DNA of 64,000 bases from assembly GCA_021613535.1 (NCBI GenBank), contig CP075494.1, forward strand, positions 1,984,001-2,048,000, given 5' to 3'. The position numbers and the translations under genes are program-made. The notes under the pieces were generated by a model. That model saw nothing but the letters and a program-made list of their open reading frames with translations. It did no database searches and had not been told where the DNA came from. This stretch comes from Adineta vaga (lineage: Eukaryota; Animalia; Rotifera). This document shows positions 13,739 to 64,000 of this stretch, one piece after another (position 1 is the stretch's first letter; each line of letters starts with the position of its first letter).

Positions 13739-15803
13739 GTCTATTTATTGCTTATATGCTAAATATTGTTTTATAATATATGATGTTCATTAAATATATC
13801 AGAAACAGATTAACGTGACAATCACTCCATTTCACTAAGATACTGAAGTCAATATACTGTAGTAAAGTACATTGAGGGTGTGAGTAAAAAAGAGACATTC
13901 CTATCCAAACAACATCATACTCAGGTACCTATCAGAGAATTGCGTTCGACGTAGATTTTGGATAAATAGGTTGAAAGATAAAAGTTACATTAAGTAATTT
14001 TAATGTATGTTCTCATCTATGTAATTGTTTTACTACTAATGATTGATTCATACTATTTACATATAAATTTTATCACTTACCGCATGCGTTTGTAAGTCTC
14101 TTGAAAGTATTAATTTCTGTCAATCATTCATTTTCATTATGTCATATTAAACAATTAATAAACGAAGGCAGTACACTTGCTTGTGCAAAATAATCGCTAA
14201 GTTGTAAGAACCATTTTTTAGTATACAAAAGAGAACTCGCACCAACACTACGTTGGATACATTAAGTCATTTGGTTTCATAAAGCGACCGGAAGTTGTTT
14301 ACTTATTAAAAATTGGCGCAACTATTTCTGTCCATATACAGGCGATAGATTGCTACTGTTGTCATGTGAAGGCGCAAACCTTAGGCTTTTGTTGTCCAAT
14401 GGAAAACAATTTTCTGTACAGATTCGTAGCAAAAAAAATGTTTTTACACAAAGCAACAGCAACGCCGTATTTACAAGACCGTCAATCTAGATTATCTTCT
14501 GACCGCACCCAACGAATACAATCAAAATGAAACTGTTCTTTTTTTATAGATGTAAAGTTAACTATTTTTGTACGATACTAGTTACTTATTACTTTATTTA
14601 TTTCTGTAAATTGGCGTGTACATTTATACACATATGTGTATCAATATTTTATTTAAGCTTAACATTTCTATTTTCCCATAAAACAAATAAATGCTAAACT
14701 TACCTCATATAGTTATAAAGTAAAATATTTATTAAAAAGTAGTACCTGTTATTAATTTTCTTATCTACTATCTGCCTATATAAATATGCTCTCGGTTGAT
14801 CAGCTCTGATATAGTTGACAGCTCTGTCAAATCAAGTTTTTGTTCTTTGGATGATATGAAATTTCGACAATAGTGCAAGGAGAATATGACTTAAGTATTT
14901 GCGAGAAGGATGTATAGCTTTGGCAATTCGTCTTTCTTCAATTGAGTACCTTATAGCGGTGTAGGATTAAGTATAAACGGAATATGAGTGGAGTAGGGTG
15001 GAGTAGTTTACCAACAAAAATGGAAAGATATAGAAGACAACAAAGAATTCTTTATATAGATATACCAAATCGAAGATTTGTTTGAGGGTGTGTTCTCGCA
15101 TCTTCATACATAGCTTTCGTTCTCTATTGTGAAACGTTCGTATAAAGAATCAAAGTTTATCAACTTAGGATCGTTTGAGTAGCTCATATCGAAAGGAAAA
15201 GGTAATAATCTATACATAGACTCTGTAAAGAAGCATCTTTTTTTATCAAAACAGTGAGTGATACAAAATGATGTTATTTTTTTCTAAACTTATTTTCTTT
15301 TCATGTTTTAATTCAATATTTTTTTACAGATCGTGTTCCACAATTAAAAGATTGATTGGTACTATGTTTTGTTTCTTTCGAAGACTGATCTATCCTTAAA
15401 CTATGAATTTCGATCTTTGAATAGCATTTCCGAAACAGCCTTTCGTATCTCTTTTTAATTTTTATGAATAGAGAATCAAAAACTGATGTTTTAATTATCC
15501 GATTGACTATTAATATTATTGTAGTTCTGTATAACTTCTATAATGGTACAATGAAAAAAATGTAATACCTAACAAAAACTTTTCCTCGGTAATCTGGCAG
15601 TACCAGGTCATTGATACGTCACTCATCCATACGCGCTCTATGTTACGATTAGCAATGTTTGGATAGAAAAGATATTTTATACTTATTTGCAAACGGTTAA
15701 ATAATAGTATGATAAGCATAAATGTGGCTATATGCCTCTGGCGTGATACCGATTTGATCATTTCATTATTCTTTTTGTGCTGATGAGAGGAAAAAGCGCG
15801 ATA

Positions 15804-18800
15804 ATGTATCTTTTCTTTAATACATTGGGTTTCATTCTGCCTCTGGTAACCCCATCATTTCTCATGTATTATACTGATTTGTCTACTGAAAGTTATTATT
15901 CGGATTGCTTATACTTCTATCGTTCTTATATGGAAAGATCAGATTCATGGGAACTGTTTCCTTATTGTACACGACATGAAAATGAACGACAATCAGAATG
16001 TTTTCATGGGCAATCAATTTCATACGGTCAACTGAAAGAAAAACAAATCTCCAGTATCACTCTAATTTCATGGAATATTCCAATCGAAGTGATCGATACT
16101 TATCTTTCGTCATATGCAGCATCGAACGACGAGTTTATCTGTAATTGCACCGATCAATACTTTGGTCCTCGTTGTGAATATTCGTACGATTATCCTGTCG
16201 AAGCAGAATTCAAGAATCTTGTTTATAGGCAACTGTCATCACGCACAAAAATGACATATTCCCAAGTAAATTCTACGAATGTAACGTGCTATCAAGGTTT
16301 AATTAGTCAGATATGTAATCAAACGGTTATATGTCTAGATTGGCGTCAGATTTGTGATGGAGTTATTGATTGTGCCAATGGAATTGATGAAAACGAATGT
16401 TTGTCATTGGAATCGAATCAATGTGATGATCAGACCAACGAATATCGCTGTATGGATGGTCGTTGTATTGCCCGTAATTTTCTCTTCGACAAACAGTTTG
16501 ACTGTATGGACAAAACCGATGAAAGTGAAAATGTTTACCTATTGGAACACGATTGCCTGTGGGAACCTTCGATTGTTTGTGAAGAGCTGTGGCATCCTCA
16601 GCGCTATGAATATCAATGCGGTGATGGTGGAGTACCGCAAATGGAAACCTGTGGCAATAACAGAGATGCCATATATTATAGAAATTTGTTCCAGTATCCT
16701 GGCGATGAAAGCACTAGACTTACTCCAAGTTGCTGGATTTATTTGCTCTGTATTTCGGGCATGCAGGATCTATTTGGCTATAACAGTTCATTTTGTGCCG
16801 ATTTGATGAATATTAAGCTTGATTCTTATCATGAAATGTATGCTCTTCCTACTACTCGGAAATATTTCAAAACTTTTTGTCCTTCAAATGTGTATATTAC
16901 TTTTCCGCCCAGGCCAATCGTAAGCACATTTGTTTACCTTGTTTATATTGAGAACTCCTTTACTGATTCTATCGCTAAGCAATATTGGACATATCCTGAT
17001 TATGTTTGCTTCGACTACAATGTCTGCTCATATGTATTTCCGTCATCACTACATTCAACAATGATAAGGATAAACAATTTAACTTGTCTGTTTACTCGTG
17101 ATTTAATGAATGAAAACAGAGTACCTAAAGGAGAAAAACTAAAATCATTCTATCGATATATTAGACAATTGTTCTCATCATGTACTAACTATCTTAACAT
17201 TCAAAACGATATACAAAATCTCTTCTATTGTCCTATATCTAAAAGATACATATCAACGTATCGTACGTTAGACTTCAAAGCTGATTGCTTCTTTCTTGAA
17301 GATAGAAAGATTGATGACACATGTGCATTGAATTTAACCGATGTATTTCAATGTGTTAATGAGCCAACAAGGTGTCTGACAAGGTATCTAGTGGCTTGGG
17401 AAGGTTGCAATTATCTTTCGAATGAGCTATATCCAGGTATATGCAATTTGCCGAGCGATTTCGGTTGTCGATTTCTGCGAGGTAACTCATTACCTCCCGT
17501 TTATTTTATTTTTCAAGAAATTTGTAATGGAAATACGAAAATGGAATACGAGATTGATGGCGAAACTGATGAAACAAACTGTAATGAATGGATTTCAACT
17601 TTCAATCTACAAAATAATTTATGCGATGGAATTTGGGACAACGAAAATGGATCGGATGAACTTGACTGTGAAAATACAATTGTATATGATATAAGCAAGC
17701 AATGTAGTATTCATGAGCATTATTGTGCTCATCAAAATAAATCCGAACTTGGCTGTTTACCCGTTGAAAAAGCCGGCGATGGAATAATCGACTGCCTAGG
17801 AGCAAGTGATGAGCGACATGTTTACTGTAAATCCGGCAGCAAGCATTACAAATGTCTAAGCGACACGCAATGCATTGCTATTACATATCTATGTGATGGT
17901 AAGCAAGACTGCCCAATGAATGATGATGAAGAACTGTGCCCTTGGTTGGCTAACATCAAAATAGCCAATAATAATATGTTTGTATGCCAAAACGGTATGC
18001 GACTTGACAGAATAGGTCAGAGATGTGATAGCATTATTGATTGTCCGCATGGGGAAGATGAATGGCTCTGTGATCTAATACGAACACAAACATCTGTTCC
18101 GTTTTCTTTCCACATTCGTATCGGTAACTATCCTCCTATTGATATTTCGTCTCCTTCATCAGTTTCGACATCGACTCTTTCGTCATCGACTATGAAATCA
18201 ATTACTACATCAACATCAATCATCAATTCTACATGGTACTGCCATCGTGGTATTGCTATTCATTATCTAGACGCTGTCGTTCGCTGTCTCTGTCCACCAG
18301 CCTATTACGGTCGAATGTGTGAATATCAAAGTGATCGTGTGACAGTTTTTCTTCGTCTAATCGTGCCTAGTAGTCTTGCTCGACGAGAGAACACAGTTAA
18401 TCAATTGCCTTCATTAATAAAAATTCTCATTCAGCTGATGGTTTACGAAACAACAGTTTATCACGAACAACTGAGTGATGTTCCTGGACATAGACATATC
18501 TTTTATTTGTTACTTCCTATGAATTCAACAAAAGTCGAGCGAAAAAACACTTTTATTCGTATCAATACTTTTCGGATTACGAGTCGCAATATCGAACATT
18601 TAACAGCAGCAAAATATTATCTCCCATTTCCGTTTCTGCCTGTCAATCGCTTGTCACTTGAACTTCTTCTATTAACAAATCGTGCATGTCAACAGACTCC
18701 CTGTGGTACACATGGTCACTGTAAAGTGTATCTGAACTCCAATGAGAGTTATTGTGTTTGTGATTTGAATTGGATGGGACCATATTGTAACATTAGTACA

Positions 18801-20621
18801 ACTGACTGTCATCGTGATGCCAAGTGTATTCAGTCAACTGACACGAATCATATCTGTGTATGTCCACTTGGCCGATTTGGCTCTCGATGTTTTGCGTCGT
18901 TCAATCCTTGCAGAGTAGACAGCTGTTCTTCCCGTGGACAATGCTATCCTACTGATCAACGAACAACAAAATACGCGTGTCAGTGTCATTCTGGCTATTT
19001 TGGTGAAAAGTGCGAGTTTCAAGAAGCAAAACTCCAAGTTTCCTTTGAATTACAGGAAGAAATTCAAGCGGGTATAATAATATTTGCTGATTTGCATTCA
19101 TCTCAAACGGGTCTTCTCTTTATTAATCATCGTGTACTTCTCAGTAGTGTTCACATGTACGATCAAATGGTGATAAGTAATGAGAATGAAGCAGCCGTCT
19201 CTCGTTTTGTTCTACTAGACACATTTGGAGTTGATATGAGCGATCACCATCTATATGTTCTTGTAGTTCGCAAAAAGCAGACTCACAAATTCTTGAGTAC
19301 TAGAGCGGTCGATTCAAATCATTGTTCTTATGTTGATTCTCTTTTTTTGAACAAGACATTGTCTACTCTAGCACCGTTAGCTAAAGTCAAATACTACGCA
19401 CGACTTTGCTGGTATAATCCGCAAGTCAAATGTTTCTATGACGATGCTTATTTATGCTTCTGTGATATTGTCAGTGCACCCGATTGTCTTGTCTTCATAC
19501 AGGAACCAACCATCTGCGACAAATTATCTACGAATCCTTGTGCTCATGGTGGACGTTGTATTCAAATTTCTAGCGAAAAGATCTGGGACTTTACATGTGC
19601 TTGTCCTAAATGTACTTATGGGGCACTTTGTCAGCTTAGTATTGAAAAATATACTCTTTCATTTGACGTTCTTTTCGGTAGACAGATTCGTCCTGGTCGT
19701 CCGCTTTCTGAATAATCCGAACTAGTGAAGATTTGTGTTGGTATCATAGCTTGTATGATATTCATTGGTTTAATTTTTAATTCACTATCATTTATTATAT
19801 TTATACAACCGCGTGCTCGCACTGTTGGTGTTGGATTTTATCTACTTATATTGACTATACTCAATCAATCTGGGCTATTCCTCTTCGGTGCCAAATTTTT
19901 ACTTGTTCTTCTTACTCATTTGAGTAATTCATCATCAATGAGTCATCAAGCTTTGTTTCGTAGTTGTGCCACAATTGAATATCTTCTCAGTATTGTGTTT
20001 AGTCTATCGGACTGGCTCGGCGTATGCGTTTCGTTTGAGAGAGTCATCAATGTAGTCAAAGGATCCAGCTTTTCTAAAGCGATGAGTCGTCGTTTAGTAA
20101 AATATGTTTGTTCCGGTCTTTTTGTTTTCATCGCAGCAAGTTTTATTCATCAACCTTTGAATGTAAATTTAATTACAGACCCGCGTTCCTCCACTGTTTG
20201 GTGTGTCAAAAGTATTCATTCAAGTTGGCTTCAAAAATATGAATCAATCGTATATCTCATTCATCTAATAGCTCCATTTACCTGCAATTTTCTCGCAGCA
20301 GTTTTTCTTCTGGTGCTTCTCACTCGTCTTAAAGCAAGAGTAAAGAGTCAAGTGATTATAAAAACATTTCGGCAACAATTGTATGATCACAAACGTCTGA
20401 TCATTAGTCCTATAATCTTAGTTCTTCTGGGACTACCTCGCCTCATCCTTTCTCTTATCAACGCTTGTACAAACCAATATTGGCTTAATGTTCTTTTTAT
20501 CAGCGCCTATCTTATTTCATATCTGCCTTCAATTGGCACATTTGTTATTTTTATTCTTCCTGCAAATTCTTACAAAAATTCGTTACGTGCAACATGGAGG
20601 AAACTATGTAAACAATGCTAA
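15804..20621 (+). CDS. LDLa/EGF-repeat ectodomain plus rhodopsin-like 7TM receptor, interrupted by one in-frame TAA at 19713-19715
   Basis: Signal peptide, multiple LDLa repeats (CDGVIDCANGIDE), EGF repeats, then 7TM (VSFERV) continuing in the same frame after the stop. No introns seen. Confidence 0.85.
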
Positions 20622-21541: not shown

Positions 21542-24500
21542 ATGTCTAATATTCGACATCATCAACCTATGAAACCACGACGTTTTCATTCTACAAATCG
21601 AACTAATTATAATGCACATCAACAAACTTCTCGATCAAACTCAGATGTCAATCGGTAATTTCTCTCAGTTAATGAATTGTACTATAATAAAACGATTTTT
21701 TTAGAAATCGAAATTGGAATTCTAAGAGTTTTCCCATTAAACGTCATTCTACAACAACATCTGATACTCCGTATGTTTTCATTTAAAATAAAAATATCCA
21801 TAAAATTGTTTTTCACTTTTTCTTAGCGCAACAAAACGACCATGTTTACCTGCAGTTTCATATCGGACCCTCACTAACCTATTGGATAAACCACCCGATG
21901 AGATTCTTACGGAAATGGTTCATTCAAATTTTCAATTAAATCAATTTTTAAATGATAAACGTATTCAAGAACGATATGATTGGATCTATTCAATGACAGT
22001 GCTACTTGAGAAAATAACCTACTGTAATCAATCACGAGAACGTATTGTAACGATTTTCGAACAATTACCAAATACACTTTATCTCGAAGGTGTTTATGAA
22101 GAAATTCGAAAAATTGATCCAGAAACTAAACAAATACGTTTTGAATTTATTAAATTATTTCTTAAAATTCTCAACAAATTTCTTTCAATGATGCCTCATT
22201 CAGCTGATGGTTTCACAAAAATTTCCGAACGTCTTGAATTACAATTTACTAAAATTCAATCAGATTCCCAAGTATAACGAATTTAAATTTAAAATTAGTC
22301 ATCATTCAATTTTCTTTCAGGAATTTATCGATGCGAAAGAAATCTTAAATGAAGTTCTTGAACGCAGACAAGAAATTGAGAAAAAAGAAGAAATTATTAT
22401 TAGTAATATTGGTCAACCACCGAATAATTATCGTCAATTATCCATCGTTCCGGATATACGAGAACTTTTATCTGATGAACGACCGTATCTTAGAAAGAAT
22501 ATCATCAATGGTGTTTATGAAAATGCTCAACAATATCTTGATGTAAGATTCGATCAATTTGTACATTTTAAATATGAAAATTTGTTGTTTTTTCAAGATT
22601 CATTTTCGTCTTTTACGCGAAGATTTTGTTGGACCATTACGCGATGGAATTCGAGACTATTTATCGAAAAGTGAACGAAAAAATCACAATATACGAATAT
22701 ATGAAAATGTTCATTTACGTGGTTCAAGATTAACTCAACGAAATGGACTTGTTTATGATTTAGTTTTAGATCACAAAATAGCATCGAGAATTTTCTGGAC
22801 AAATAGTCGCCGATTAATCTATGGAAATCTACTTCTTCTTACATTCAATAATTTCCAATCTTGTTCATTTGTTACTGTTGAAGATCGTTCACAAATTGAA
22901 AAGAATTTTATTATATCAGTAAATTGATCTTTTCATTTTGTCTTTTTCTTATTTCATTTAATCATAGGTTAAAACATTAGATGATGAACAAGTTCAAAAT
23001 GATTTGGATACAATTGATCCTTCATGTTCATTAACAATGATTGAAACAACAACATATTTTGAAGCATATCGACCAGTTTTAGATGCATTACAAAACATCC
23101 TCGCTGATCATCGATTTCCTCTTACTCCATTTCTTCTTAAATTAACTAATGAGAGAATATCACCGGATTATATCAAATCAACAACAACCTATGATTTTAC
23201 ACCACTTCTTGTTGGTCCCGATTCACATGTTCAGTCAAGTTTAACGAATCATAAACAATTTAAATTAAAATACCAACAAGAAGCTCAAATTGACAATAAA
23301 TATAAAACCGTTTCCGTTTTGAATCAAAACGGATGGCCAACAAGTGAACAGTTACATTTAAATCCAAAACAATACGAAGCATTAATTTTAGCTCTAACAA
23401 ATAAAGTCGCACTTATACAAGGACGTAAGTTTAACACTACATTTCGAAAGAAAGATTCGATTTTTCCTTGTTTATTTAGCACCAGGAACTGGAAAAACAT
23501 TTCTTGGTGTGCGAATAACAGAAATGCTTTTACATAATCGATCAGTTTGGTGTCCATCACAAGAACAAGCAACACCAATTCTGATGATTTGTTATACAAA
23601 TCATGCATTGGATCAATTTTTAGAATTAATTGTCGAACGATTAAATATACAGAAAGGTTTGAATGAAGACTATAGATTTTCTAGTTATACGTTTTATTCA
23701 TTTTTCTTATAGGTATTGTTCGTGTTGGAAGTCAATGTCAAAATCCTAAAATTCAACAATTTTCATTACAAAATGCCCGTCGCTCTGCTCGAGAATATCG
23801 TTCTCTACCTAACGATGTCTGTAAGCGAAGATGTGAGATATTCCAAGAAAAACTAGCAACTGAAGCAAAGTTAAAATCATTTCAACACGAAATGGAACTA
23901 TCCCAAACAACTATAGTACATCTTTCATCATTTAGTCAATATTCTATCATTAATAATAGACATTTATTCTCATTCACATCAATTGAGAATAATACGGATG
24001 CCGATAAGGCATTTTTTCAATGGCTTGGTTTTCAAAATATATTAGAATCAAAGAACTTCGAAATGAATGAGAATTTCAAAAGAAATAAACGAAATGATAT
24101 ATGCGAAGAAGAGGAAGAAGAAGAACAACGTCGACGAGATGAAATTAATATGGAAGAAGAGGAATATTCGTCTCCATTGGTTAGAGAAAATCGAGATGTA
24201 GAGAAAAAATCAAATGATATTGATCAATTAGTTCAACGTATCATTCAAAAGTCCACCACTTTGAATGATGAAACAATTCGATACATAAGTGATAATCTTT
24301 GGGAACTTAAGTGGGAACAACGTTATGATTTATATCGTTATTGGCTTTGGGAATATCAAAAACAATTACATAATTCTATCAGTAATCATAGTCGAGTCTA
24401 TAATCAAGTTTCATCAGCTCTTGCTGAACATCGTCAAGACGAAGATTATTATCTTTTAAAAGATAGTATTATCGTTGCTATGACAACCACATGTGCTGCA

Positions 24501-27500
24501 AAATATCATACAATATTAGAAAAACTTAGTAAGAAAATTCTTTTTTTTCAATTCGAATAAAAAATTTCATTCTAGAAAGTAAAATTGTGATTGTTGAAGA
24601 AGCAGCTGCGATATTCGAAGCACATGTTATAACTGCTTTAAATTCCAAATGTGAACATTTAATTTTAATTGGTGATCATGTTCAATTAAAACCCAATCCA
24701 AATGTATATCATCTTGGAACGAAATATCATCTTGATGTTTCTTTATTCGAACGTTTAATTAAAAATAAACTTCCCAATGTTCGATTAAATATTCAACATC
24801 GAATGCGACCGGAAATCTCTCGCCTTATGAAACATTTCTATGATGATTTAGAAGATCATCAGAGTGTTCAAACTGATCGCGAATCTATCAGTGGAATTGA
24901 TACAAATGTATTTTTTATTAATCATTCAAATATGGAAACAACTATTGATGATGGAAGTTCAAAACGAAATGAATATGAAGCAAAATATGTGATTGAATTA
25001 GCTCAATATTTAATTAAACAAGGTTATCAATCGAAACAAATCACGATTCTTGTAATGTATCTTGGTCAACGACAGTTCATTGCTAAACAAGCGAAATCGA
25101 TACGAAATCTACAGGGAGTTCGAATTCTGGTATTTTATATTTCTTGTTGAAGAAAATGTTTTGACGCTTTTTCTTTTCATAGGTGACGGATAACTATCAA
25201 GGTGAAGAAAATGATATTATTATCTTATCGTTAGTTCGTAGTAATGTAGAAAAACAAATTGGTTTTCTTAAAATTCATAATCGAATATGTGTGGCTTTAT
25301 CACGTGCACGTTGTGGATTATTTGTCATTGGAAATATGAATTTGTTGGGAGAAGTTGACGAAATGTGGAAGAAAATCATTTCATCTCTATTGGAAACAAA
25401 TCAAATTGGAAAAGGTTTAGTTGAGGAAAAAATTCAATCAATAAAAATGATCTTTTTCTATGTGAATAGGATTAACACTTTCTTGTCGACAACATCCACA
25501 AGATCGAATTCTTGCTGATAAACCTGAATCATTTGCACAACGTCCTGAAGGTGGTTGTCGAAAAACATGTGATACTCGACTTGAATGTGGTCATCGTTGC
25601 GAATTAACGTGTCATAATTATGATTTAGAGTAAAAGATAAAAAAAATGAATAATTTTCTTTCAAAAATATTCTTTTTCATTTCAGACATGGCAATATCGT
25701 TTGCCATAAAAAATGTTCTGAACGATTATCATGTGGTCATTTATGCACGAAAAAATGTCATTTTCAAACACCAGATCAACATAGTTCTTGTTATATTTCT
25801 GTTGAAAAGATCATTCCAGAATGTGGTCATAAGATTCAGATTGAATGTTGTGAAAATCCGACAAATCAAGATTGTAAAAAGGCAACATTAAAACAACTAC
25901 CTTGTAATCATATGGTCGAAGTTCCATGTCGAATTATTTCATCACTAAATGAATTAAAACGATTTTCTTGTCCAAAACCATGTGAAACAATACTTGAATG
26001 CACACATAAATGTGTTGGGAAGTGCGGACAATGTTATGCAGGACGATTACATGTTCCATGTGGAGAAAAATGTAAACGTGAATTGATATGTTCACATGTA
26101 AATTTATCGATTGAAGAAAGATTAAGTTCATGTTTAGATTTGTTTTTGTAGGTTTGTAAAGCATCTTGTACTATTGATTGTCCACCTTGTTCACGTGAAT
26201 GTCAAATACATTGTGTACATTCGCGATGTAAGAAGAAATGTGGAGAGATATGTTCACCATGCAAAGAGGTTTTATTTCATTCGTTTATATAAATTATCAT
26301 GAACGTTTTTGAATTTAGCAATGTGATTATCGATGTAAACATTTTCGATGTACTCGTCAATGTTCTGAACTATGTGATCGCGGGCCGTGTAATGAACCAT
26401 GTTACCGGAAATTAAGATGCGGTCATTCTTGTAAGTTTAAATTGCAAATCAAATCAAATCGAATCGAATATTTTTGAATAGGTATTGGCATGTGTGGTGA
26501 ACTATGTCCTCGAGAATGTCGTATATGTGATAAAGACAAAGTTGAAGAAACATTCTTTGGTACTGAAGATGAACCTGATGCACGATTTATTGTTCTACCT
26601 GATTGTAGACATATATGTAATGCATTTGAAATGTTTTGAAGGTTATTTCGTAATGAAATTTTATTTAGTTGAAGTTACTTCACTCGATAGATTTATGGAA
26701 GATTTTGTAAAGAAATCGGATGGACAAACAGCGATTCGTTTTCCTGAATGTCCACTTTGTCGACAAAAGGTATATGAATGTAAACGATATACGCCAATTA
26801 TTAATCAAGCATATGATTTAATCATTCAAGTGAAAAAGAAAATCTTAGGTAATAAATCTAAGGAAGAAATCAATAGTCGACGAAAACAATTAGTCGACAA
26901 ATATGAACGAATTAGAAAAAATTTCCAAGAAATTCAATTCAATGCATCGATGGAAAGATTTTTTTCAATTTTATACAAAGATAATCACTGCTTTTCGGAT
27001 GATAAGTTAAATTTAATAACAAATACGATGACATTTCTTCAAGAAATTTATAAAATTCGAATGGATGGAAGTGAGAAATTACAAAATCATTTATTTGAAG
27101 AACAAGTTAATGAACCATTAAATCAGATTATGAAATATTTCTTTAAACAAGAACGAAATTTTGCCGAACAACAATTAAACGATATTCAATCGGAATTGGA
27201 ACGTATTCGTCGAGTCATTTGTATTGAAACATTTATTTGTTCATTAAAACAAAATTTAGAAGAAAACGAAAAAGAAGGTTTGAAATCAATGCGAGATTTA
27301 ACACGAAAATCTGGTCGATTTACTGATCAAGATCAAGAAAAATTTGATGAATTAATGAAAAAATTTCAACATTTAACTCATTTACCTGGTTTAGGAATTA
27401 CTGACGACGAACGAATACAGATTGTTCGTGCTTTTAATATGGGAAAAGGTCATTGGTATACCTGCCCAAATGGTCATCCTTATATTATCACTGAAGTAAG

Positions 27501-27705
27501 ATCTTTAATTTCTTTCTGTTAAACTGACTTCAAATATATTCTTTAGTGTGGTGGAGCAAATCAAGAAAGTCAATGCCCACAATGCCAAGAACGAATTGGT
27601 GGCCAAAATCATCGTTTATTAGATACAAATCGACATTTTGGTGTAATGGATGGTTCACAACATTCAGCTTGGTCAAACGAAGCAAATTTAAACGTGCCGC
27701 GCTAA
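21542..27705 (+). CDS. ZNFX1: NFX1-type zinc finger-containing helicase, multi-exon
   Basis: HFRLLREDF, Walker A QG/PPGTGKT, TNHALDQ, IVEEAA, IGDHVQL, QHRMRPEI, NYQGEE, VALSRA, NF-X1 Cys/His fingers, and a C-terminal RZ finger GHWYTCPNGHPY..ECGG...CPQC..IGG. Confidence 0.93.
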
Positions 27706-33300: not shown

Positions 33301-35216
33301 GAAAACTTCTGGGGAGACATCAAGCTCAGAAAAAACTTAAGTTTGGTTTTGTATCTTAAATTTTGCTTAAACAGAATTTAATTAGAATGATTTCTATATA
33401 ATATTTAAGAAAATATTCACTTTATGTAGCAAAAGATCAATGTCCACAATAACTTCTCTAAAACTTCTGATTTATTCTATATACATTATGCTAATTAAAT
33501 TCTCTATTTGGACAAATTCGAAATTCGAAATTCAAAATCAACCTTCCGTTTTTTCCGAGTCCGATGTATCCCGGAGAAATTTTCAAAAAGGTTTATAAGT
33601 TGACGACTTGATAGTTCTGTCTAAACTCAATAAGAATGCAAATCCCTTTAATTTAATTGATAGGTCATTATGTATTATCAAAATACGAGAAAACTTTCGA
33701 AATGAGAGAAAACATCTCAAGAACGTCCTTCCTTAGTTGTTTTATACTCGCCACTAGGGCGCTGCAAGTGGACCAGGACGGGTGTGGGCCCGGGCCCGGG
33801 TCTAATAATTTTTTTAACCTCGGGTCCGGGTCTGAGCCCGGGTCCAATAATATCTTTTTCTTCGGGTTCGGGTCCGGGTCCGGGTCTCAGTTAAAAAAGA
33901 TGGACCCGTAACTCCCTAGGGACTTCTTCAAAATTTGGTGAAAAAATTGAATTTTTCAAGCGTCGACTCGATTGATAGTGATTGTTGATATAATATGAAT
34001 GAACAACACGATTTTTGCACAGATCTTCCCCTTCTGGTAACCACTTAAAACTAGCTACGACTTCGTTCCTTTACATTTCTTATACTCAGAGGCTGCTGTA
34101 GATTGAAAAGGAACAACCAGATTTAGACCCGACCCGGTTGGGTCTGGATCTGATTCCATCGGATCTGAGCCTCACCGGGTCCAGAATATGTGGACCCGCA
34201 GCCCCCTACTCACCACAAGATTGTTCCAGTATATCAAATTTTTGAATACGATAATTGAAGTAATCAAGAACAAATATATTTCCATAGGTATCAAAACTAA
34301 AATCTAATGGATCATGTAGTTGGTTAGAAGGTGAACCCCAATCATAACATCCAAGTAAACATCGAAAACCATTCGGTCCTGATCCAATTATACGAAGACC
34401 ATTTTTAATCGAAATGAAAAGATATTTTTCAGCGTCTAATACAACTTCTGTTGGGCAATCAAGTTCAATTGTAATATCTTTCGAATTTTTTCCTACTACT
34501 GTTTTTCCAACTGTTTGTCCAAACGCAAATAGATGAATTCTATCAGCCAGACAATCTGCCACATATAAATCAAAATTTGTATCGACAAAGATTCCTTTGG
34601 GAGCACTTAATATATCATTGGGAAATTTTGCTTGACCTGGACCAACTACTACTGTCACTTTTGTCTCATCATAATTTAAAAGTACTATTAAACATTTCAT
34701 GTGCAAAGTCTTTAAACAATATAAAGCATTATTGATGTCAATAAACATAGCTTGACATGACCATTTGATGATTTTAGTAAAGGTATTCGAACTTGATATC
34801 CATTTAATAATTTGCCGATTAGTACTAATATAAATATCACCAATGTTGGTAACAAACATCGAATATATAAACGAATCCTCATAATCACTGATTGTAATCG
34901 TATCGAATCTATCCTTATACCATGTGAGAATTTTATCTTCATCCTTATGTACAATATAAACTGTGTTATTTTTATCGATAAAGAAAACTCCACGTCGGTA
35001 CCCAATTATTTTCTCATCAACAAAAGTCGTTGCATCCGAATTCCATTTTACATTTGGACAAAATTTTGGTTGATTCAATGAATAAACTATAATGAAATGA
35101 AAATATTCTAACAAAAACAATTTTCATAATAAAAAAATAATTGAATTACCTGATATTTTATTGATTACAATCACAAAGAAAGTAACAATAATATCGAAGT
35201 TCTTCTTTTTTAACAT
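30325..35216 (-). CDS. NHL-repeat plus three about-130-aa repeats plus rhodopsin-like 7TM receptor, 6 exons
   Basis: Signal exon from ATG 35216, NHL exon (LYVADCLADRI, FDTYGNIFVLDYFNYRIQKF), three paralogous exons (YYEAI...GY Y...FDPLNP..NLI...YILVIT), and a final 7TM exon (CVAIERA). Splice phases are compatible where checked. Confidence 0.78.
33755..34208. mobile_element. Non-autonomous hAT-type MITE in an intron
   Basis: Termini TAGGGCGCTGC / GCAGCCCCCTA; 8-bp flanking duplication CTCGCCAC / CTCACCAC (7 of 8); many subterminal GGGTCC/GGACCC motifs. Confidence 0.85.
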
Positions 35217-37575: not shown

Positions 37576-40500
37576 TTAATAGTTTGTATGATCCATTGGA
37601 TGAACGTTGTTGTTGTTATTATTATTGACTTGTTTATATCGAAAAAAGATCCAATGAAAAAAAGCAATAATATAAGGTGAAAGTGTTTTTAAAGCAATCG
37701 TTAAACCTCCGTAAAGTCCTAGAAGAATGACAATAATCTCCAAGAAATTCTTACGTGGATTGAACGAATATGAACAACTTGCTGGTTGACATTGTTTAAA
37801 ATATTGAGCATAACTTGTATCTACTGACCATTGTTTATCAAAAACATTATCAACTAATTGTGATACTGTTCGATTTATTGAATATTTATTATTTAAAGGT
37901 GCAATTAATGGTGTAATTGGTATTTGATTAATATTAATTTGATTTAAACATGTTTGATTATAAAGACAAATAAGAGATGATTGAAAAAGAGAATTAATAG
38001 GTGCACAACCAACAACAAAACCAGGAATTATTTCTCCATTATGAATAACTGGTTCAGTACAATCGGCCGATATAGAACATGAACAATTTCCATGTGAAAT
38101 AGGTTGTAAAGAAATTCCTAATCCAATTAAATTCGGATCAAATTTAATCGATGAATAAATCCAATTTAATGAAAAAATCGTCATCAATTGATTACTATTC
38201 ATTAACTCTTTTGCAAATCCATAAAAAAAACTTTGATCTGATTGACTTGAACTTATTATATATTCAATTGTATCATTAATTTGTGTCATCAATTGTATTT
38301 CAGATAAAACTTGTGCACTAATCAAAGTACTAGAAAGAAAATGTGATACATAATTTGTAATATTTTCTTGAAAGAAATAACATAATGATTGAAGACTTTG
38401 AAAATAAAGTACACCACGTCCATAAAAATCAATTCGACTTAAATTTGTCCAATCACCATTTGCCGATATACTTTCAATCCATTTATGTTCAATAAATGAA
38501 CTTGAACATACTTCATGTAATGTTGTATTTACTTGAACAAATGTTCCATATGATATTGATACATGAGTACAAGGACATTGAAATGATGATATATCTTTTC
38601 TTTGTAAAAGTTCTTCATAAATATATTGTGTTGGATTCGATATTGTTATTGTTGTTGTTGTTGATTGAATAAATGTATTATAAAAAAGTAATGTTAACAT
38701 AGATAATGATAAAAGTATGATATATAATCGTGTAGAATGATATTCTTTTTAATAGTTAATTCAGATGATTTTTGTCGATGATAAAATAAATTTAAATGAA
38801 CAAATTTAGAAGGTAATTCTCGTGTATTATAACGAAATGCATTGAAACATCCTATATAAAAACCAAAAGCTATTAGCACAATTCCTGTCGGATTGAGGAT
38901 GTGGGTGAATAGAAAAACGACTTTTATTTTGATATTAACCTTTTCGATGTGTAATAAACCAATTTCCTAATTGAACAATTAGTGGAATACTTAGTTTTAA
39001 TACAACATTTAAACCACCAAAAAGACCAATTAAAATAGTTATAACAATAAGAATATTTCTTCGTTCAGTAATTGAATAAGTACAATATTGAGGAATACAT
39101 TCTGTGTAATATGAATTAAATGAAATATTTTTCGACCAATTATCAAGCATTAAATGTTCAATAATAGTTGATAATGATGTTGAAGATTCAAATCGACTAG
39201 ATATTGAATTATTTAGTAAAGTTGGTAATCCAGAAAGAAAATAAGTTCGATTTTGCCAATATTTAATAACCTAAAAATAAATTCTATTATTACATTGTTT
39301 TTCTCTAAATTTCATACCGTTTGATAACAATCTGATGAATACCAACAAGCAAGATTTGATTGAAAAAGTGTTTCCATTGAACTACATGCAATATGTATAC
39401 CTTCAATTTTAAAATCTATATCAAATGATTGAGTTAGTGAATTGTATAAATAGAAAGCTGCATCATCTGAACATGATGTTGGATTAGATAAACATGAACA
39501 ATTTGAAAAGAATTGAAGAGGTAAAACTTGTATTTGACTACCAGATATTGTTTGTCTAATGGGTAATTTATATGTTAGAGTTGATGTTGCTGACATAAGT
39601 TGAGTTATACCGATCATTTCACGCATTTGTTTAATACCACGAGCAAAATAAAGTTGAACATCATTTATAAAGAAATCAGCTAATTGTGTTGCTTGAATTT
39701 CGAATGTGTCACGAGTAAGAAGTTTATTATTAATAAAAAGATTTGTTTGAAATGCTAATAATTGATTATAAAAGACAAGTTGAGAAAGTCGACAAAATGT
39801 TGTTAACCATTGAAAATATTCAACACTTAATAATATAAAATCAGCTGAATAATAAATATCATTTCTTATAAATGCTAATTGTGAAAAAAATGTTGGATCA
39901 ACAAATGAACTTGTACATATTTGATGATAACTTGCTTGAAAAGAGATAATTTTCGAATATGGTATTGATATTTTAGTACAAATACATTGAAGTGTATCTG
40001 AATATGTTTGATAAAGTTTTTCATAAGTTTCTAAAGATGGATTTTGAACTGTATAAACAATTGTTTCTTCCGTAATAACAGTATAACAAAGAAGTGCTAT
40101 AAAAGTAATTATAATTACGAAAATATATAGACGAGTTGTATGACGTTCATATTTTTGTTTGATAATATCATTGGATTTTGAATCAAATAAGTTAAGCATT
40201 TTTATTTTTAACCAAAACCAAAGAAATTTCTTTTTTATTTTATTCATTTTCGATCTTTCTTCATAACAAATAACAACAGGACGTTGATGAGAAACTTGAT
40301 TTCGTACAATTAATTGATCAATTAGTCGAACTATGGATGGAATAAATATTCTTAATCCAGTATTTAAACCACCAATTAAAGCAATAATTGTTGTTAAAAT
40401 AATCAAGATATGATTTCGTTGATTATATGAATATTCACATGTTAATGGAGCACATTCAGTAAAATACTTCTCATACGAACTATTTACTAACCATTGTTCT

Positions 40501-41599
40501 ACCATTAATTCATTGAGAAGAGTTTCAATAGTTGTTGATTGAAGAAAACGAGTTGTTAATATTGTTGATAAAGGTTGAAATGATTGATTAGTTGATATAA
40601 GAAGTTCAATACAAGTTAAATTATAATAACATTCTAATGTTGAACCAAGAACACTTTCTAAAGGATAACAACCTGGTTGAATACCTTGAATTGGAATGGA
40701 ATAACTTGTAAGACTTTCTAAATTATAATAACCAAATGTTGGAAGTCGTGGAATTGTATATATTGCACCTGGCATTGCACAATTATCCATTGTTACACAA
40801 TAACAAGGACTTGTCGAACTATTTAATTGATAAATATTAATACCAATATTTGCTGTTAAAGAATCATTGGATTTTATCATTAAATAACTATTTGTACCAA
40901 GACCATTCATTAGACGACTACCTGTCAAGACAAGACGAAGAAAACTAATTAAAACAGATAAATGCCATTGGCCTGCTGATCGTACAGATTCGTATTGAAT
41001 ATTAACTTGTAATTGTACTAAAGCTCGAGAAAGAATTTCTGCACTAACTAATGATGAAGAAAGAACATTGGATAATGCATAATCAATTCCTTTTTGAGCA
41101 TTTTTACAAAATGACCGAAGAAATTGTGCATGAGCACTAAGAATTCTTCGAACATCCATTGGCCACAAATTAAATATATCAGTTGGAAATGTTGATGAAA
41201 TCCAATCATCATTAATAAATACACTTGAACATATCTATTAAATGATTTTTTTTTAAATTGTTACTATATGATCCTTATTACCTGATGATAGATCGGTTGC
41301 ATATGAATAAAACGTTCATATTTAACAGCAATTTGTGAACAAGGACATTTTAATACATTTGCATAATTCATTTGAAGTTTTTCAAATGTTTCTACTGAAG
41401 GTGATTTGATAGTAACATGAATTGTTTCTATTTGAAAAGCTGTATATATAACTAATATGAAAATAGCTATAATAAGTAAAACGAGATAAATACGAGTTGA
41501 CCAACGTTCTTGTCTGAGAATTTTCGTTTCAGTTAATCCACTTTTAAAAAGATTTAAATTGATCAAACCATCTCGTATTTGAGAACATAATGATCCCAT
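37576..41599 (-). CDS. Large membrane protein of three tandem TM / Cys-rich ectodomain / TM units; 1-nt frameshift near 38748
   Basis: Three repeats of LNLF..TRxY-TM1-NPS..CxC..H..C.S.F...GC..ES...L.C.Y...C...W...Y...C.P..C.Y-TM2(LxGGL). Confidence 0.8.
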
Positions 41600-42214: not shown

Positions 42215-42321
42215 ATCTTGAGAGTATAGGTACTACTGACACTAGGGTATGGGTGCGGATGAGAGTCAAGAGAATATAGTCTCACCGATGCCGACGCCGA
42301 CACCCACACCCACACCCACCC
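42215..42321. repeat. Telomere-like palindromic element
   Basis: ATCTTGAGAGT...GGGTATGGGTG...CACCCACACCCACACCCACCC. Confidence 0.7.
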
Positions 42322-42456
42322 TTCGATACAATATTATTGAATGATACTTATTGTTATGTTCATTTATCCACATGTAATCGTGGACCATCACCATACTGTC
42401 TTGATTGGCGTGAGGTTTGTGATGGAAAAACACATTGTATTAATGGTGATATTGAT
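42322..42456 (+). pseudogene. LDLa-7TM family gene fragment B
   Basis: Open FDTILLNDTYCYVHLSTCNRGPSPYCLDWREVCDGKTHCINGDID, compare CLDWRQICDGVIDCANG in the 15804 gene. Bounded by telomere-like tracts on both sides. Confidence 0.8.
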
Positions 42457-42764
42457 GGGTGTGGGTGTGAATACTAGATCTATCTAACACCCACACCCGA
42501 GCTTACAAATGTAGCTATTAACTAGTCTTAGAACTTTACTAATTCTTTAACTAAAGTATCAAATTAAGTCAAATGTAAATTAAAAAGATCGAGAGAGCAG
42601 TCAATACTCTATTCAACCATATACGTAAAAATAAAAATTTTACTAAAGCTTTGTAAAAATACAGCTAATGAAAGAAAATGAATAAAAGTAGATCCATCGA
42701 CCTGTATAGAATTATTGATAAGTAGACTTGATCGTAAAGGAAACTCATAGCAATTAAAAATAGT

Positions 42765-44128: not shown

Positions 44129-45847
44129 TTATTCAAATCTACCTAAATATCCGAATGTAAATACAGTATAAGTAAATGCATTTAACATCAAATGTATACT
44201 AACAAGATATTGTTCATTCAGAAATGCGACATATGAAAATACAAAAATATACAAAGTCATAACTAAATATCCTTTATGAATTTGCAAATAGTTAAATTTG
44301 TGCCGAATCGTAAGAAAAATTGGAGTTTGTGATATGATAATATACTTAATTATATTCCATAGCAATAACGTATTTTTTGTGTATACAATCGAATGAATAC
44401 AATCTTTACAACATTGAACATTTGTATTGTCATTATGATAAGCATCAACTTGTATTTCTTCAATATTCAAACGTGTCTGAGTGCCAAATTTTGGAGTAAC
44501 AATCCATTTTTTAGCAGAATTCAAATTCAAAAAGCCTGCTATTGCAGAAATAGCATGATGAAATAACATGGCATTACAAAAAAGAGAATAGACGATCGTT
44601 AGATGAATTTTTTCCGATGTATAATACAGAATATTTGAAGTTAGAAGTATTGGAAAAAATGTAATAAACATATTCACATTAGATTTTTTTTGTAAACAAG
44701 CATTGATGGCGATATTCAACAGAAATATAATAAAACGAATAATATAAAGACATGGTCGAAAAAGCATCCATAAACAATGTAATTTTCGATAAATATTCAT
44801 GTGAGAAGTGGTACAAACTGTTTGAAATAATTTTCGAAATACTTGTGCAGGTCCACTGAACCATCGATATTGTTGTGAAAGATAGGCGGTAAATGTAGGT
44901 GGAAGTTCATTAAGACATTCAACATCGACTATATAAGCAGAATGCCAACCATTCATATGAGCTCGAACTGAAATATCTAAATCTTCTACTAATGTATCTG
45001 TATGCCAGCCTCCACATTGATAAATAGCTTTTGTTCGCCAAACACAGGCAGATCCATTAAATTGAAAGAAAGAAGACATACGATATTTGACCTCTTGTTC
45101 GCATTTATGATGATGATTGAGAACAATTTCTTGCATTTGTGTTAACAATGATTCTTTTCCATTAATAAATGTCCATCTTGCTTGCGCATAGGCTGCTTTT
45201 GGATCTTTTAAAAGAATAGGTATTGTTTTTAATAAAAAATTTTTCTTCGGCAAAAAATCAACATCAAATAATGCAATAAATTCACATTCTTGAATCTTTT
45301 CTAATCCATTTTTCAAGTTTCCCGCTTTAAAACCTTGCCTATTTTGACGTCGAATAACACTAATTCGATATCCTCGATCAAACCATTCTTGTACACATTG
45401 ATCAATCATTTTCATAACTATTTCATCAGTAGAATCATCCAATACTTGAATAATTAAACGATCTTTTGACCAATCTAAATTGCAAGCACATGTAATCATT
45501 GAAATACAAAATTCCTTTTCATTCATCATTGGTAATTGTACAGCAACCATAGGATATGCATTATCAGTTGATAACGATGATGGTGTTGGGTGTGATTTTG
45601 ATGGTAGACAAAATCGAAGAATAGTATAAATTATTTGTTCAATATCTTCGGAACTTTGAATAATAATAAATAATATTGATAAATTTTGAATTAAATTGTG
45701 AATTGTTATTGATGATCTTTGAACATGATTAACATTCATTGCTTGATAAGTAATATTGAGACAATCATTTGATATTGTTGTTCTCTCCAACAAACATTGG
45801 ATTGGTAGAAAAATAAGCACAGTTGTAACAATCATTATGTAACTCAT
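44129..45847 (-). CDS. Cellulose synthase-like (CslA-type) GT2 processive glycosyltransferase, intronless
   Basis: YPMVAVQLPM, IQVLDDSTD, GFKAGNL, FDVDF (DxD), FNGSACVWR, TLVEDLD, QQYRW (QxxRW), and C-terminal TM helices. Confidence 0.92.
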   Translation of the reverse strand: MSYIMIVTTVLIFLPIQCLLERTTISNDCLNITYQAMNVNHVQRSSITIHNLIQNLSILFIIIQSSEDIEQIIYTILRFCLPSKSHPTPSSLSTDNAYPMVAVQLPMMNEKEFCISMITCACNLDWSKDRLIIQVLDDSTDEIVMKMIDQCVQEWFDRGYRISVIRRQNRQGFKAGNLKNGLEKIQECEFIALFDVDFLPKKNFLLKTIPILLKDPKAAYAQARWTFINGKESLLTQMQEIVLNHHHKCEQEVKYRMSSFFQFNGSACVWRTKAIYQCGGWHTDTLVEDLDISVRAHMNGWHSAYIVDVECLNELPPTFTAYLSQQYRWFSGPAQVFRKLFQTVCTTSHMNIYRKLHCLWMLFRPCLYIIRFIIFLLNIAINACLQKKSNVNMFITFFPILLTSNILYYTSEKIHLTIVYSLFCNAMLFHHAISAIAGFLNLNSAKKWIVTPKFGTQTRLNIEEIQVDAYHNDNTNVQCCKDCIHSIVYTKNTLLLWNIIKYIIISQTPIFLTIRHKFNYLQIHKGYLVMTLYIFVFSYVAFLNEQYLVSIHLMLNAFTYTVFTFGYLGRFE

Positions 45848-46480: not shown

Positions 46481-48600
46481 TTACGGCCATGTTAATAATA
46501 CACCACCACTACTTGTGTCGGTGTGATTCAATGGTCCTTGATAGTATACTGTTGCATCTTCCGATACAATTGCATTGATTGCCACCGTAGCACAAACATA
46601 CACTGATGCTGATTTAGTTGCTATGACATTTGCAATAGTTGGACATTTTGTTCTTTCCATGTATATTGTAGAATTTGTAACATCAATATGGATTTCATTT
46701 AATGAACAAAGATCATAAACAGTCAATTCATCTGTACCTACGACAGTGGCAAACGTAGGACAGCTAGATGCGCTAACATTAATAGTTGAATTAGAACCTT
46801 GAATTTTCAATGACTCCTCTGCACAAATATTCACGACAGAACTATTTTTTGTAATATTAAGAACAGCTAATGTTGGACATTGCCACGCTGAGTTCAAAGC
46901 AACCATAGTATCTTGTAAGATCATATTAATTTTTTTACTCGCACAAATATCCGAAATATTCGTCGTTTGAATAGCATTAAGAACAACTGTTTCTGAACAA
47001 ACACTTGATGAATCAATAGAAACAGTACCTATACTAGCAACTATGATATTCATTTTTTCACTTGCACACAGATTGAAAATTCCACTTGTGTTGGCAGCAT
47101 TAAGGTGAACCGTTTTTGGGCATGCAGTTAATGAATCAATAATAAGAGGTTTTATATAAACAAGTGTTATATTCATTTCTTCACTTGCACATAGATTAGT
47201 AATTGTACCCATGAACTGAACATCGAGAACGACTCTTTTCGGGCATGCAGTTGCTGAATCAATAGAGATAGAATTTATCTCAAAAACTGTTATATTCATT
47301 TCTTCACTTGCACAAAGATTGGAAATCGTACTCATCTGATAAGCATCGAGAACGACTCTTTTTGGGCATGCAGTTGATGAATCAATAGTAAGAGGACTTA
47401 TATTCTTAACTGTTATATTCATTTCTTCACTTGCACATAGACTGGAAACGATACCGATCTGTTCAGCATCAAGAAGAACCGTTTTTGGGCATGTAGTTGA
47501 TGAATCAATAGTAAGAGGACCTGTATTTCTAACTGTTATATTCATTTCTTCGCTTGCACAAAGATTGAAAAATCCGTTCACGTCCTTAGCATCAAGAAGA
47601 ACCTTTTTCGGACATGCATTTGATGAATCAATAGTAAGAGGACTTATATTCTTAACTGTTATGTTCATTGCTTCACTTGCACATAGACTGGAAACGATAC
47701 TGATCTGTTCAGCATCAAGAAGAACCGTTTTTGGGCATGTAGTTGATGAATCAATAATAAGAGGACCTATATTTCTAACTGTTATATTCATTTTTTCGCT
47801 TGCACAAAGATTGGAAATTTCATCTATGCTTTGAGCATCAAGAAGAACCTTTTTTGGACATGCAGTTGCCGAATTAAGAGAAAAATTGCTCATGTAAGCA
47901 ATTGTTATGTTCATTTTTTCACTTGCACAAAGATTGGAAATTGTACCCGTGTCAGAAGCATGAAACTGAACCCTTTTTGGACATGTAGTTGATGAGTCTA
48001 TAGAAGTACGCCTTGACCTTGTGACTTTTATATTCATTTCTTCACTTGGACAAAGATCGGAAACGAAACCAACAAAGGCCATATCAAAAGTACTAACTTT
48101 TGCACATGATAAATCTGGATTAAATGTAATATTATTAGCCTGATATACCACTATATTCATTTGATCCATAGCACAAATATTTTGAACTTCAGAAGTGTTC
48201 ATAGCTGTGACAACAGTCATTTTAGGACATGTTGATGTTGAGTCAATAGTGACGATAGATTTATCCTCGGTTCGTATGTTCATAAAATCTATTGCACATA
48301 TCTCATTGACATGAGCTGCATCTGTAGCATGAACATTGATAGTTTTCGGACATGACAATGGTGTTGAAGTGACGTTTGCATTTTCATTGGCTTCAATATT
48401 CAGTTGATGAAGTGCGCAAGCATTGGTCACCGTAGAATTATCCGTAGCTGTTAAATTAAGTACAGACACCAAACACGTGTAACTATTGACTATGTCCACT
48501 GTATCAATATTCTCCACTAAGACAGTAACTGCTGGATTCAATGTTGAAACAGAATAATAGAGAATCAGAATAGAAATATGGACAATGTTAAAGATCCTAA
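46481..48600 (-). CDS. Secreted Cys-containing beta-solenoid repeat protein, GIN (DUF2807)-like
   Basis: 41-aa tandem repeats CPKxVxLDA...LCASEEMNIT; C-terminus AINAIVSEDATVYYQG resembles the GIN end. The frame extends upstream into signal-like IFNIVHISILILYYSVS. Exact start uncertain. Confidence 0.7.
47030..48065 (-). repeat. 123-bp coding tandem repeat with an alternating 246-bp higher-order unit
   Basis: TTC(A/G)CTTG(C/G)ACA recurs about every 123 bp (about 47057 to 48041); KNISPL and RN(I/T)GPL units alternate. Confidence 0.85.
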
Positions 48601-55422: not shown

Positions 55423-55764
55423 CTTCAAACGGCGGCGAGTTACTGAGAGTAAAAGCATGTTACCCATTACAAGTCACTTATGACGCATTTCGAAGTGAAT
55501 TTTATTCCTTCTCTTTCTCTCTCTCAATAAAAAGAAACCTGTATGAATGAGTTGGCAACTCATTTATTCCATCTCTGACGGTGATGTCATGTGAATAAAT
55601 ATGTTAAAGGAACAAAAGAAAACAGCAGGTTTTTTCCATCGGTTCTCTTTATACAGGATTATTACTCATTATTCAAGTCTATATATACGTATGGAAAAAA
55701 ACACAAATGCGCTTCTATCTTAGTTCAATTCTTGATATATTCTAGTAGATTGTTACCAAAAAAC

Positions 55765-57423
55765 ATGCTTTTGCTTATAGTACCATTTATCTTGGGAATT
55801 ATTTCACATATAATTTACAGAAAAACTAAAGCATCAACAAGAGTATGTTTAGATGGTGCTCAATATGATCATGCTATTATTATTGGAGGTAGTATTGGTG
55901 GAATGGTAACTGCTGCTTACTTAACACAATATTTCTCTCGAATCACAATTATTGAATCTGATGATGTATTAAATGATAAATTAATGAAATGTACACCCGA
56001 AGAACTATTAGGTTATCGTTGTCATCTTGAAAGTCCAGCACCAATAGGACGATCAAGTGTTCCCCAAATGTATCAGATACATCTAATGGCAATTGGAGGA
56101 CGAATTATATTGCGGGAATTATTTCCTCAGCTTGACCAAAAACTGCTAAATGAATACAATGTTCGTTCTTATTCATTAAAAAATGAGTCAAGACTCGTTG
56201 TTAATGATGTGTTATTACATTCAAATTTAACCGAAGATTTTCGATGGCTCGGTATTGATCGTTTTACATTAGAAATAGCAATAAGAAAAGAATTATGTTC
56301 ACAATATGGACATAAAATTCAATGGATTTGTAATTCAAAAGTGAAACAACTTCTTGTTGATCAATCATTAAATATTGTAAAGGGTGTTAAATATCGTCAT
56401 AAACAAAGTAATCATGCATCAACAGTCGATCTGTATGGCGATTTCATTATTGATTGTAGTGGTCCATATTCATCAACAATGAAATGGTTAAAAGAAGGTT
56501 TGAATTTAATTATTCCAACTGAACAAATACATTTTGGTTGTGGTTATCTTACATTTGTTGGTGAAAGAATGAAGACTGGAAATTCGTTGTTAGATTCAAA
56601 GCCTGTTATTGGTTGTACAGTTAATACTCCTGAGAAAAATAATGGTTGGTTTATAATTCCAATACGTACAATAAAAGGAACAGATAAAAGATCTTTGGGA
56701 ACATTATCAACAGTTGCAATAAATTCTAATAATTCAGAATATCCACCATCTGATTCCTACGAGAATTTATTAGAATGGGCGAAAGATAATCTACATTCAG
56801 ACTTTTATACAATTTTAAAATCAACACAAGTCTGTAGTCCATTGATTTCATATAATCGTCCAATTGACTATTGGAAATATGTTGAATCATTAGGAGAAAA
56901 ATGGCCCGAAAATTTTATACTATTAGGTGATGCAATGTGCACAGTTAATCCTCAATTTGGTCAAGGTATGACACATGCATGTCGACAAGCAAGAGAACTA
57001 GGAAACATATTTGCAGAGAATCTTTATGAATTAAAAGATATATCTCATATTTATAATAATCGTGCTTCAGCAATTAGTGAAGAATGTTGGCGTGCTTCAA
57101 CGGCAAGCGATTGGAAAACACCAAAGTTAAAAGTTGTCAAAACTGATAAAAATGGTGAAACTAAAACTTGTCAACGCGACGGTAATTCTGATGCGACAAC
57201 AAGTGATCATTTACAAGCACCTCTTCTAATGAAGTTTATGCAATGGTATATGTTTTGGTTTCTGCAATGCGCAGGAAAATCTGGACAATTTTCTACAGAA
57301 TTTCAGTATGTTATGAATCAATGTAGTAGTCCGTTTCAATTGTTCAATCCATTAACAGTCTTAATCGTTTTTTATGCTGCATTAATGAATTACCTCAGTT
57401 TATTTATAAAAAGATCTTTTTAA
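55765..57423 (+). CDS. FAD-dependent oxidoreductase/monooxygenase of bacterial-fungal type with N-terminal membrane anchor, intronless
   Basis: Rossmann motif HAIIIGGSIGG...ITIIESD, DFIIDCSG, and LLGDAMCTVNPQFGQGMT. First in-frame ATG is at 55765. Confidence 0.88.
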   Translation: MLLLIVPFILGIISHIIYRKTKASTRVCLDGAQYDHAIIIGGSIGGMVTAAYLTQYFSRITIIESDDVLNDKLMKCTPEELLGYRCHLESPAPIGRSSVPQMYQIHLMAIGGRIILRELFPQLDQKLLNEYNVRSYSLKNESRLVVNDVLLHSNLTEDFRWLGIDRFTLEIAIRKELCSQYGHKIQWICNSKVKQLLVDQSLNIVKGVKYRHKQSNHASTVDLYGDFIIDCSGPYSSTMKWLKEGLNLIIPTEQIHFGCGYLTFVGERMKTGNSLLDSKPVIGCTVNTPEKNNGWFIIPIRTIKGTDKRSLGTLSTVAINSNNSEYPPSDSYENLLEWAKDNLHSDFYTILKSTQVCSPLISYNRPIDYWKYVESLGEKWPENFILLGDAMCTVNPQFGQGMTHACRQARELGNIFAENLYELKDISHIYNNRASAISEECWRASTASDWKTPKLKVVKTDKNGETKTCQRDGNSDATTSDHLQAPLLMKFMQWYMFWFLQCAGKSGQFSTEFQYVMNQCSSPFQLFNPLTVLIVFYAALMNYLSLFIKRSF

Positions 57424-63700: not shown

Positions 63701-64000
63701 TTCACCTGTGAATAAGCTACTTTTCGAAAATCCCATGTTTCATAATGAGTAGCATTTTCAATATTTAATCCTTCAATCCATTCTTTACTAATAAAAACAC
63801 TTGAACAAACAGGATGCATTATAATATTATTTGAAATAAAATTCTTATATGGTATTGTAATTGTTGAACATGGACATGAAAGAGTTTCAGCATGTTCAGC
63901 ATATAATTGATGAAAAATATTAGGTGTTATATTGTCGATAATCACTGTTTTAGATTCTGTTTTGATTAAAGTTCCATAAAACAATATATAAAGACTTACT
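57795..64000 (-). CDS. Large three-unit TM/Cys-rich/TM protein fused to an extra TM, a Thr-rich stalk and FG-GAP/VCBS repeats (5' partial)
   Basis: Three units ending SLYGGL, SMIGGI and GLQGGL. A phase-compatible splice leads to VIGLLLCILAGVILF, a T-rich exon, then DLNGDNLTD, DVDNDGLVD and DFNNDSYLD repeats. Confidence 0.75.
62001..62480 (+). mobile_element. Probable non-autonomous Helitron-like insertion in an intron
   Basis: Starts A|TCTATATATATATAAAG, is GC-richer than its flanks, and enlarges an intron to about 550 bp. The 3' CTRR end is not clearly identified. Confidence 0.4.

Follow-up and report, generated by a model that had tools for sequence, protein, structure and literature searches.

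A gene in the bdelloid rotifer Adineta vaga raises the question of whether a trimeric assembly of two-transmembrane (two-TM) subunits can occur naturally as a single chain. The gene occupies positions 41599-37576 on the minus strand of a 64,000-nucleotide stretch of the genome (contig CP075494.1, positions 1,984,001 to 2,048,000), termed the window, and holds three units that each consist of an LNLF...TRxY motif, a first TM helix (TM1), a cysteine-rich loop and a second TM helix (TM2). The original prediction, made from the sequence of the window, interpreted it as a candidate natively concatenated trimeric ion channel of the type formed by DEG/ENaC/ASIC or P2X subunits. Our analysis finds that three units per chain is characteristic of a large family and suggests that the units pack as a pseudo-trimer, but provides no support for kinship with these channels.

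Three units in one chain

The joined gene model specifies 1280 residues in four exons, with an X at a single frame break. LNLF motifs lie at residues 15, 453 and 875. The model has six hydrophobic segments, corresponding to two TM helices per unit. Units 1, 2 and 3 are 438, 422 and 406 residues long, and pairs of units share 27-29% identity with BLASTP E values of 1e-53 to 2e-35, far beyond chance. Each unit has 12-14 cysteines, with 12 positions conserved across the family, and five to seven N-glycan sequons. The glycine motifs in TM2 are ALIGGL, GLFGGL and GLYGGL, in unit order. Thus, the three diverged copies described previously are present with the quoted motifs, but not all of them fall within the anticipated 430-450 residues. 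Homology searches were submitted exon by exon; the joined model was used only in local scripts.

The proposal that these units form one polypeptide meets a complication in the present assembly. The reading frame of exon 4 shifts at a run of five A residues between LNLFY and EYHSTRLY, and the NCBI entry for unit 3 is a separate 374-residue protein. However, a paralog with 95% DNA identity (L002; G000:C3:16636538-16640704) carries six A residues at this site and reads through in frame. The two copies give a ratio of non-synonymous to synonymous change (pN/pS) of 0.42. With a distant ortholog as outgroup, the window lineage has 13 changes at 1810 non-synonymous sites and 15 at 485 synonymous sites, a rough count that points to purifying selection. 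Because the paralog has the longer run and the window lineage appears to be under such selection, the break is probably a homopolymer assembly error or a very recent change. An old pseudogene was rejected given the absence of stops and the same substitution counts. Two separate genes were also rejected, because the paralog has no start codon upstream of unit 3 and the joining intron is conserved. The match between L002 and the window gene, which lie on different contigs, extends through the introns and indicates a recent interchromosomal duplication.

Homologous loci bear on the same point. Orthologous loci in Rotaria sp. Silwood1 and four further assemblies each have three units. The intron in unit 2 (profile column ~305) is kept at all of these loci, and that in unit 1 (column 108) at all except L036. 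A GT..AG intron that restores the frame directly after TM2 of unit 2 is found in six of six related loci tested. Moreover, the homolog P0102 is an intronless, single open reading frame (ORF) of 1235 residues with three units, and an intronless locus at C2:1.013 Mb has three units inside one frame of 1260 codons. Because intronless three-unit ORFs exist, the presence of the units in one chain is settled from DNA alone.

Unit number and history of the family

A phmmer search with one unit retrieves 2720 relatives at E <= 0.001. Among 240 proteins, the maximum is 2.8 unit-equivalents and none exceeds three; three complete units are found in 46. Longer arrays would be expected to head the phmmer list, because its score adds over repeats. 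Unit searches of the A. vaga genome (100.8 Mb, six contigs) produced 1034-1318 candidates, of which ~100 were scored per search. Inspection of two scored lists by eye revealed 22 genomic clusters of three units and none of four or more, a count from which unscored units could be missing. Longer family members gain a seventh TM helix and extracellular FG-GAP or NHL propellers, with no fourth unit. The expectation of a fixed count of three per chain is therefore upheld by the proteins, the genomic clusters and the orthologs.

One-unit and two-unit database entries are frequent. P0202, P0223 and P0270 were considered as one-unit proteins and rejected, as all three were traced to exons of three-unit genes. 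True one- or two-unit genes may exist; for example, no further unit flanks L012 at a distance of up to 1.5 kb. The family probably comprises hundreds of genes per genome. A Philodina roseola protein annotated as "telomere-associated protein" (ARX11414.1) is a true three-unit member, and its name appears to refer to location. A literature search found no description of the family. A possible resemblance to oomycete proteins was not confirmed by a weak, word-limited search for non-rotifer relatives, which gave bdelloid names only.

The window contains part of a second, multi-exon member on the minus strand (59265-64000 and 57795-59200) with three units, the first of which is cut by the window end. 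Across 57795-64000, the units are followed by a probable seventh TM exon, a threonine-rich stretch and an FG-GAP propeller, whose splicing together is putative. Separately, an NHL-repeat-like ORF, recognized by eye and with no Pfam match at 0.001, lies 2.4 kb downstream of the three-unit gene (34206-35120, minus strand), and there is no evidence of fusion. Most family hits map no farther than ~5 Mb from a contig end, and ~11 of 106 were placed by eye between 4.5 and 11 Mb.

A FastTree phylogeny of 147 units shows that most units group by position. Position labels change 25 times on the tree, versus 69.6 times in shuffles, and for 125 units the best match is the unit of corresponding position in a different gene. 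However, the units of P0095, P0099, P0102 and P0103 form gene-specific clades (support 97-100), and all units of one five-gene subfamily form their own clade (support 97). Because the three units of several genes are each other's closest relatives, the number three was regained or maintained repeatedly. Either triplication recurred or gene conversion homogenized the units, and under both scenarios the count stays at three.

Predicted packing and relation to known proteins

Unit 3 of the window gene, modelled by AlphaFold with 150 aligned units, has a predicted local distance difference test score (pLDDT) of 92.4 and a predicted template modelling score (pTM) of 0.79. From TM1, the predicted chain enters a strand and two long helices, then a cysteine-rich strand region and a further strand that precedes TM2. 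Coevolution couples the strand after TM1 to the strand before TM2 (columns 63 and 368), and TM1 to TM2; it also suggests three of six likely disulfides, with noise below the top pairs. The absence of a signal peptide, together with the cysteines and N-glycan sequons in the loop, suggests that the ends of each unit are cytosolic. On the cytosolic side, the chain consists of short linkers that carry the conserved LNLF...STRxY. No cytosolic signalling domain is found in the family, whose only extra domains are the extracellular propellers that follow the seventh TM helix.

The TM2 consensus is Y-I-I-T-T-L-I-[G/S/A]-L-x-G-G-L-T, ending in a basic residue and proline. One helical face presents T (79%), G/S/A (98%), G (89%) and G (97%), and such a face of small residues fits three helices that cross tightly at an axis.

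For the natural three-unit homolog P0102, whose units are relatively alike, AlphaFold gives pLDDT 87.6 and pTM 0.78 over residues 22-1220 (1199 residues). Three freely placed units are expected to yield a pTM of ~0.4, as estimated from the TM-score formula (d0 of ~11 Å at this length). Because the observed value is well above this estimate, AlphaFold appears to place the units rigidly, and rigid packing of three units is thus borne out as a prediction for this homolog. It is quite likely that the three modules pack rigidly as a pseudo-trimer in one chain; three-fold symmetry and a pore would be further, putative properties. Alternatively, each of the three units might fold by itself, like a bead on a string, and the count of three would simply be inherited from an ancestral gene. 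A single unit does fold confidently alone, and the grouping of units by position fits descent from an old triple. This explanation is nevertheless very improbable, given the whole-chain pTM and because no growth beyond three units is seen, although duplication or homogenization of units is evident across hundreds of genes.

Deg/ENaC channels are trimers (PMC10507113). The rotifer family resembles DEG/ENaC/ASIC proteins (PF00858) in having a pair of TM helices in each unit, ends on the cytosolic side, a large cysteine-rich ectodomain, a glycine-rich TM2 and three units per assembly. It differs in its 12-cysteine pattern, its two long ectodomain helices and the placement of units in one chain. 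P2X channels (PF00864) and PAC (TMEM206) are also trimeric two-TM proteins, with strands that lead out of TM1 and into TM2. The rotifer units share this topology and the TM-flanking strands, but their ectodomain is largely helical and has no profile match.

The proposed kinship or shared fold with DEG/ENaC/ASIC or P2X was not recovered by any comparison. Sequence and profile searches of Pfam, NCBIfam and PDB returned only noise, and a 60-sequence TM2 profile detected no ASIC, ENaC, P2X or PAC in PDB (E <= 10) or Pfam (E <= 1). Foldseek (PDB and viral libraries) and VIA-align, run without an ectodomain-only search, gave no fold match beyond a helix hairpin. Nav entries among the Foldseek results were dismissed as noise (E of 0.44 or worse, TM-score ~0.05). 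The gene matches neither the PF00858 (ASC) profile nor solved ASIC and ENaC sequences, and the ectodomain fold of palm, thumb and finger plus knuckle and beta-ball is not seen. Likewise, no match to PF00864 or the P2X fold is found, and the PAC alignment covers 68 residues of helix hairpin and not the PAC ectodomain fold. The pre-TM1 HG motif and the TM2 GxS filter are absent from the column profiles.

The family could still be an extremely diverged offshoot of ENaC/ASIC, P2X or PAC in which the TM scaffold was retained but the ectodomain exchanged. The common topology, with strands that directly exit TM1 and enter TM2, is consistent with this possibility, and the TM2 motif Y-x4-L-I-[GSA]-L-x-G-G presumably aligns with the ASIC degenerin-site region, although this is a lead only. 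We consider such an origin unlikely in view of the negative TM2 profile, the unmatched ectodomain and the separate DEG/ENaC and P2X genes of the genome, where PF00858 has 69 exon matches and true P2X genes sit at other loci.

The predicted two TM helices and cysteine-rich loop are confirmed, with ends that are probably cytosolic. The same topology also fits the non-channel trimer Erv41-Erv46, in which two-TM proteins with a disulfide-bonded luminal domain form a 1:2 heterotrimer that retrieves cargo (PMC7001479). The rotifer family shares two TM helices, a disulfide-bonded extracytosolic domain and a presumed trimeric state with Erv41-Erv46 and ERGIC2-ERGIC3 (PF07970). These cargo receptors are encoded by separate low-copy genes with no sequence match to the rotifer family, and the COPIIcoated_ERV profile has no Pfam match in the gene.

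Candidate function, gene features and significance

The gene product would be a six-pass glycoprotein of ~1280 residues, in which three homologous two-TM modules on short cytosolic linkers assemble intramolecularly into a pseudo-trimer. Each module would comprise TM1, a beta-strand, a disulfide-locked ectodomain, a second beta-strand and TM2. A composite binding surface may arise from the ectodomains, and the three TM2 helices may meet via their small or polar face (T, G/S/A, G, G, T). Such a protein could be a stimulus- or ligand-gated ion channel, that is, an ionotropic sensor whose subunit combination is fixed by the single chain. It would represent a separate family that works like ENaC, P2X or PAC in outline without being a member.

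An ionotropic sensor with putative ion conduction is the simplest proposal, because the family is very large and fast-evolving, its ectodomains are variable and it has no signalling tail. We regard this function as the most economical one, with a probability a little short of even. A more specific proposal, put forward somewhat more tentatively, is that bdelloids possess a large family of ion channels gated by ligands or stress, which would be natural single-chain pseudo-trimers with an ectodomain fold absent from PDB and, in some members, an extra extracellular beta-propeller.

Nearly as likely as the sensor is a non-conducting built-in trimer, which would bind cargo, mediate adhesion or recognize microbes at the surface or in the secretory pathway, and whose glycine motif would just pack helices. 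The shared topology and trimeric state of Erv41 and Erv46 (PMC7001479) fit this role, and COPII_ERV is the best non-rotifer row in a structure atlas. However, its TM-score of 0.31 over 197 residues falls short of similarity at the level of the fold, and no link is seen in sequence. The size and rapid evolution of the family and its propeller fusions also suit a binder, as does the missing channel filter motif; FG-GAP and NHL types are listed among bdelloid expansions tied to defence and signalling (PMC3846280). Against such a role, no sorting or signalling tail is seen, and hundreds of paralogs would seem better suited to sensing than to housekeeping retrieval.

Coordinates of the gene features, and of other loci in the window, are listed below.

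Table 1. Features of the three-unit gene and of other loci in the window
Feature	Position	Strand	Description
Exon 1	41282..41599	-	Start codon, cytosolic LNLF...STRIY, unit 1 TM1, first part of ectodomain; profile columns 2-108
Intron 1	41235..41281	-	47 nt, GT..AG, within HQ-ICSS motif; position common to orthologs except L036
Exon 2	39318..41234	-	Remainder of unit 1 and its TM2 (ALIGGL), linker on the cytosolic side, then TM1 and the larger part of the ectodomain of unit 2
Intron 2	39271..39317	-	47 nt, GT..AG; same position in orthologs
Exon 3	38940..39270	-	End of unit 2 ectodomain and TM2 (GLFGGL)
Intron 3	38852..38939	-	~88 nt, GT..AG; 55 or 70 nt with other acceptors that keep the frame; links unit 2 to unit 3
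Exon 4	37576..38851	-	Linker, unit 3 (LNLF, TM1, ectodomain, TM2 GLYGGL), stop codon
One-base frame break	38746..38750	-	A5 run, versus A6 in paralog L002
Glycosyltransferase family 2 ORF	44129..45847	-	Intronless, 572 aa, C-terminal hydrophobic segments; cellulose-synthase-like appearance; candidate foreign gene
Repeat ORF	46481..48541	-	686 aa; tandem ~42-aa Cys-containing repeats; no Pfam match
Flavin-dependent oxidoreductase-like ORF	55591..57423	+	Intronless, 610 aa; Trp_halogenase match; candidate foreign gene
ADP-ribosyltransferase-like domain	1906..4662	-	With TPR repeats
Two loci identified by eye	15777..20621 and 21882..27522	+	Cys-rich LDL-A/EGF-repeat protein, then seven-TM ORF; multi-exon ZNFX1-like helicase
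Short element	42240..42500		Repeats of GGGTGT/ACACCC, present in both orientations; may be a small mobile element

To our knowledge, single-chain trimeric two-TM channels are known solely as laboratory concatemers. The four-repeat Nav and Cav channels are natural single-chain oligomers with position-specialized repeats; they share only this design principle with the rotifer family, as they consist of four six-TM repeats with an unrelated fold. If the channel interpretation is correct, the family would be the trimeric counterpart of these proteins. A natural single-chain family would also let asymmetric subunit roles be studied within one ORF. The intronless members make the family directly testable, and it would supply a confidently modelled ectodomain that lacks a PDB match. 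If true, such a family, whose genes probably number in the hundreds in each genome, would constitute a new sensory or receptor system of bdelloids. Even if its members do not conduct ions, they would form a large, undescribed receptor family of the A. vaga genome.
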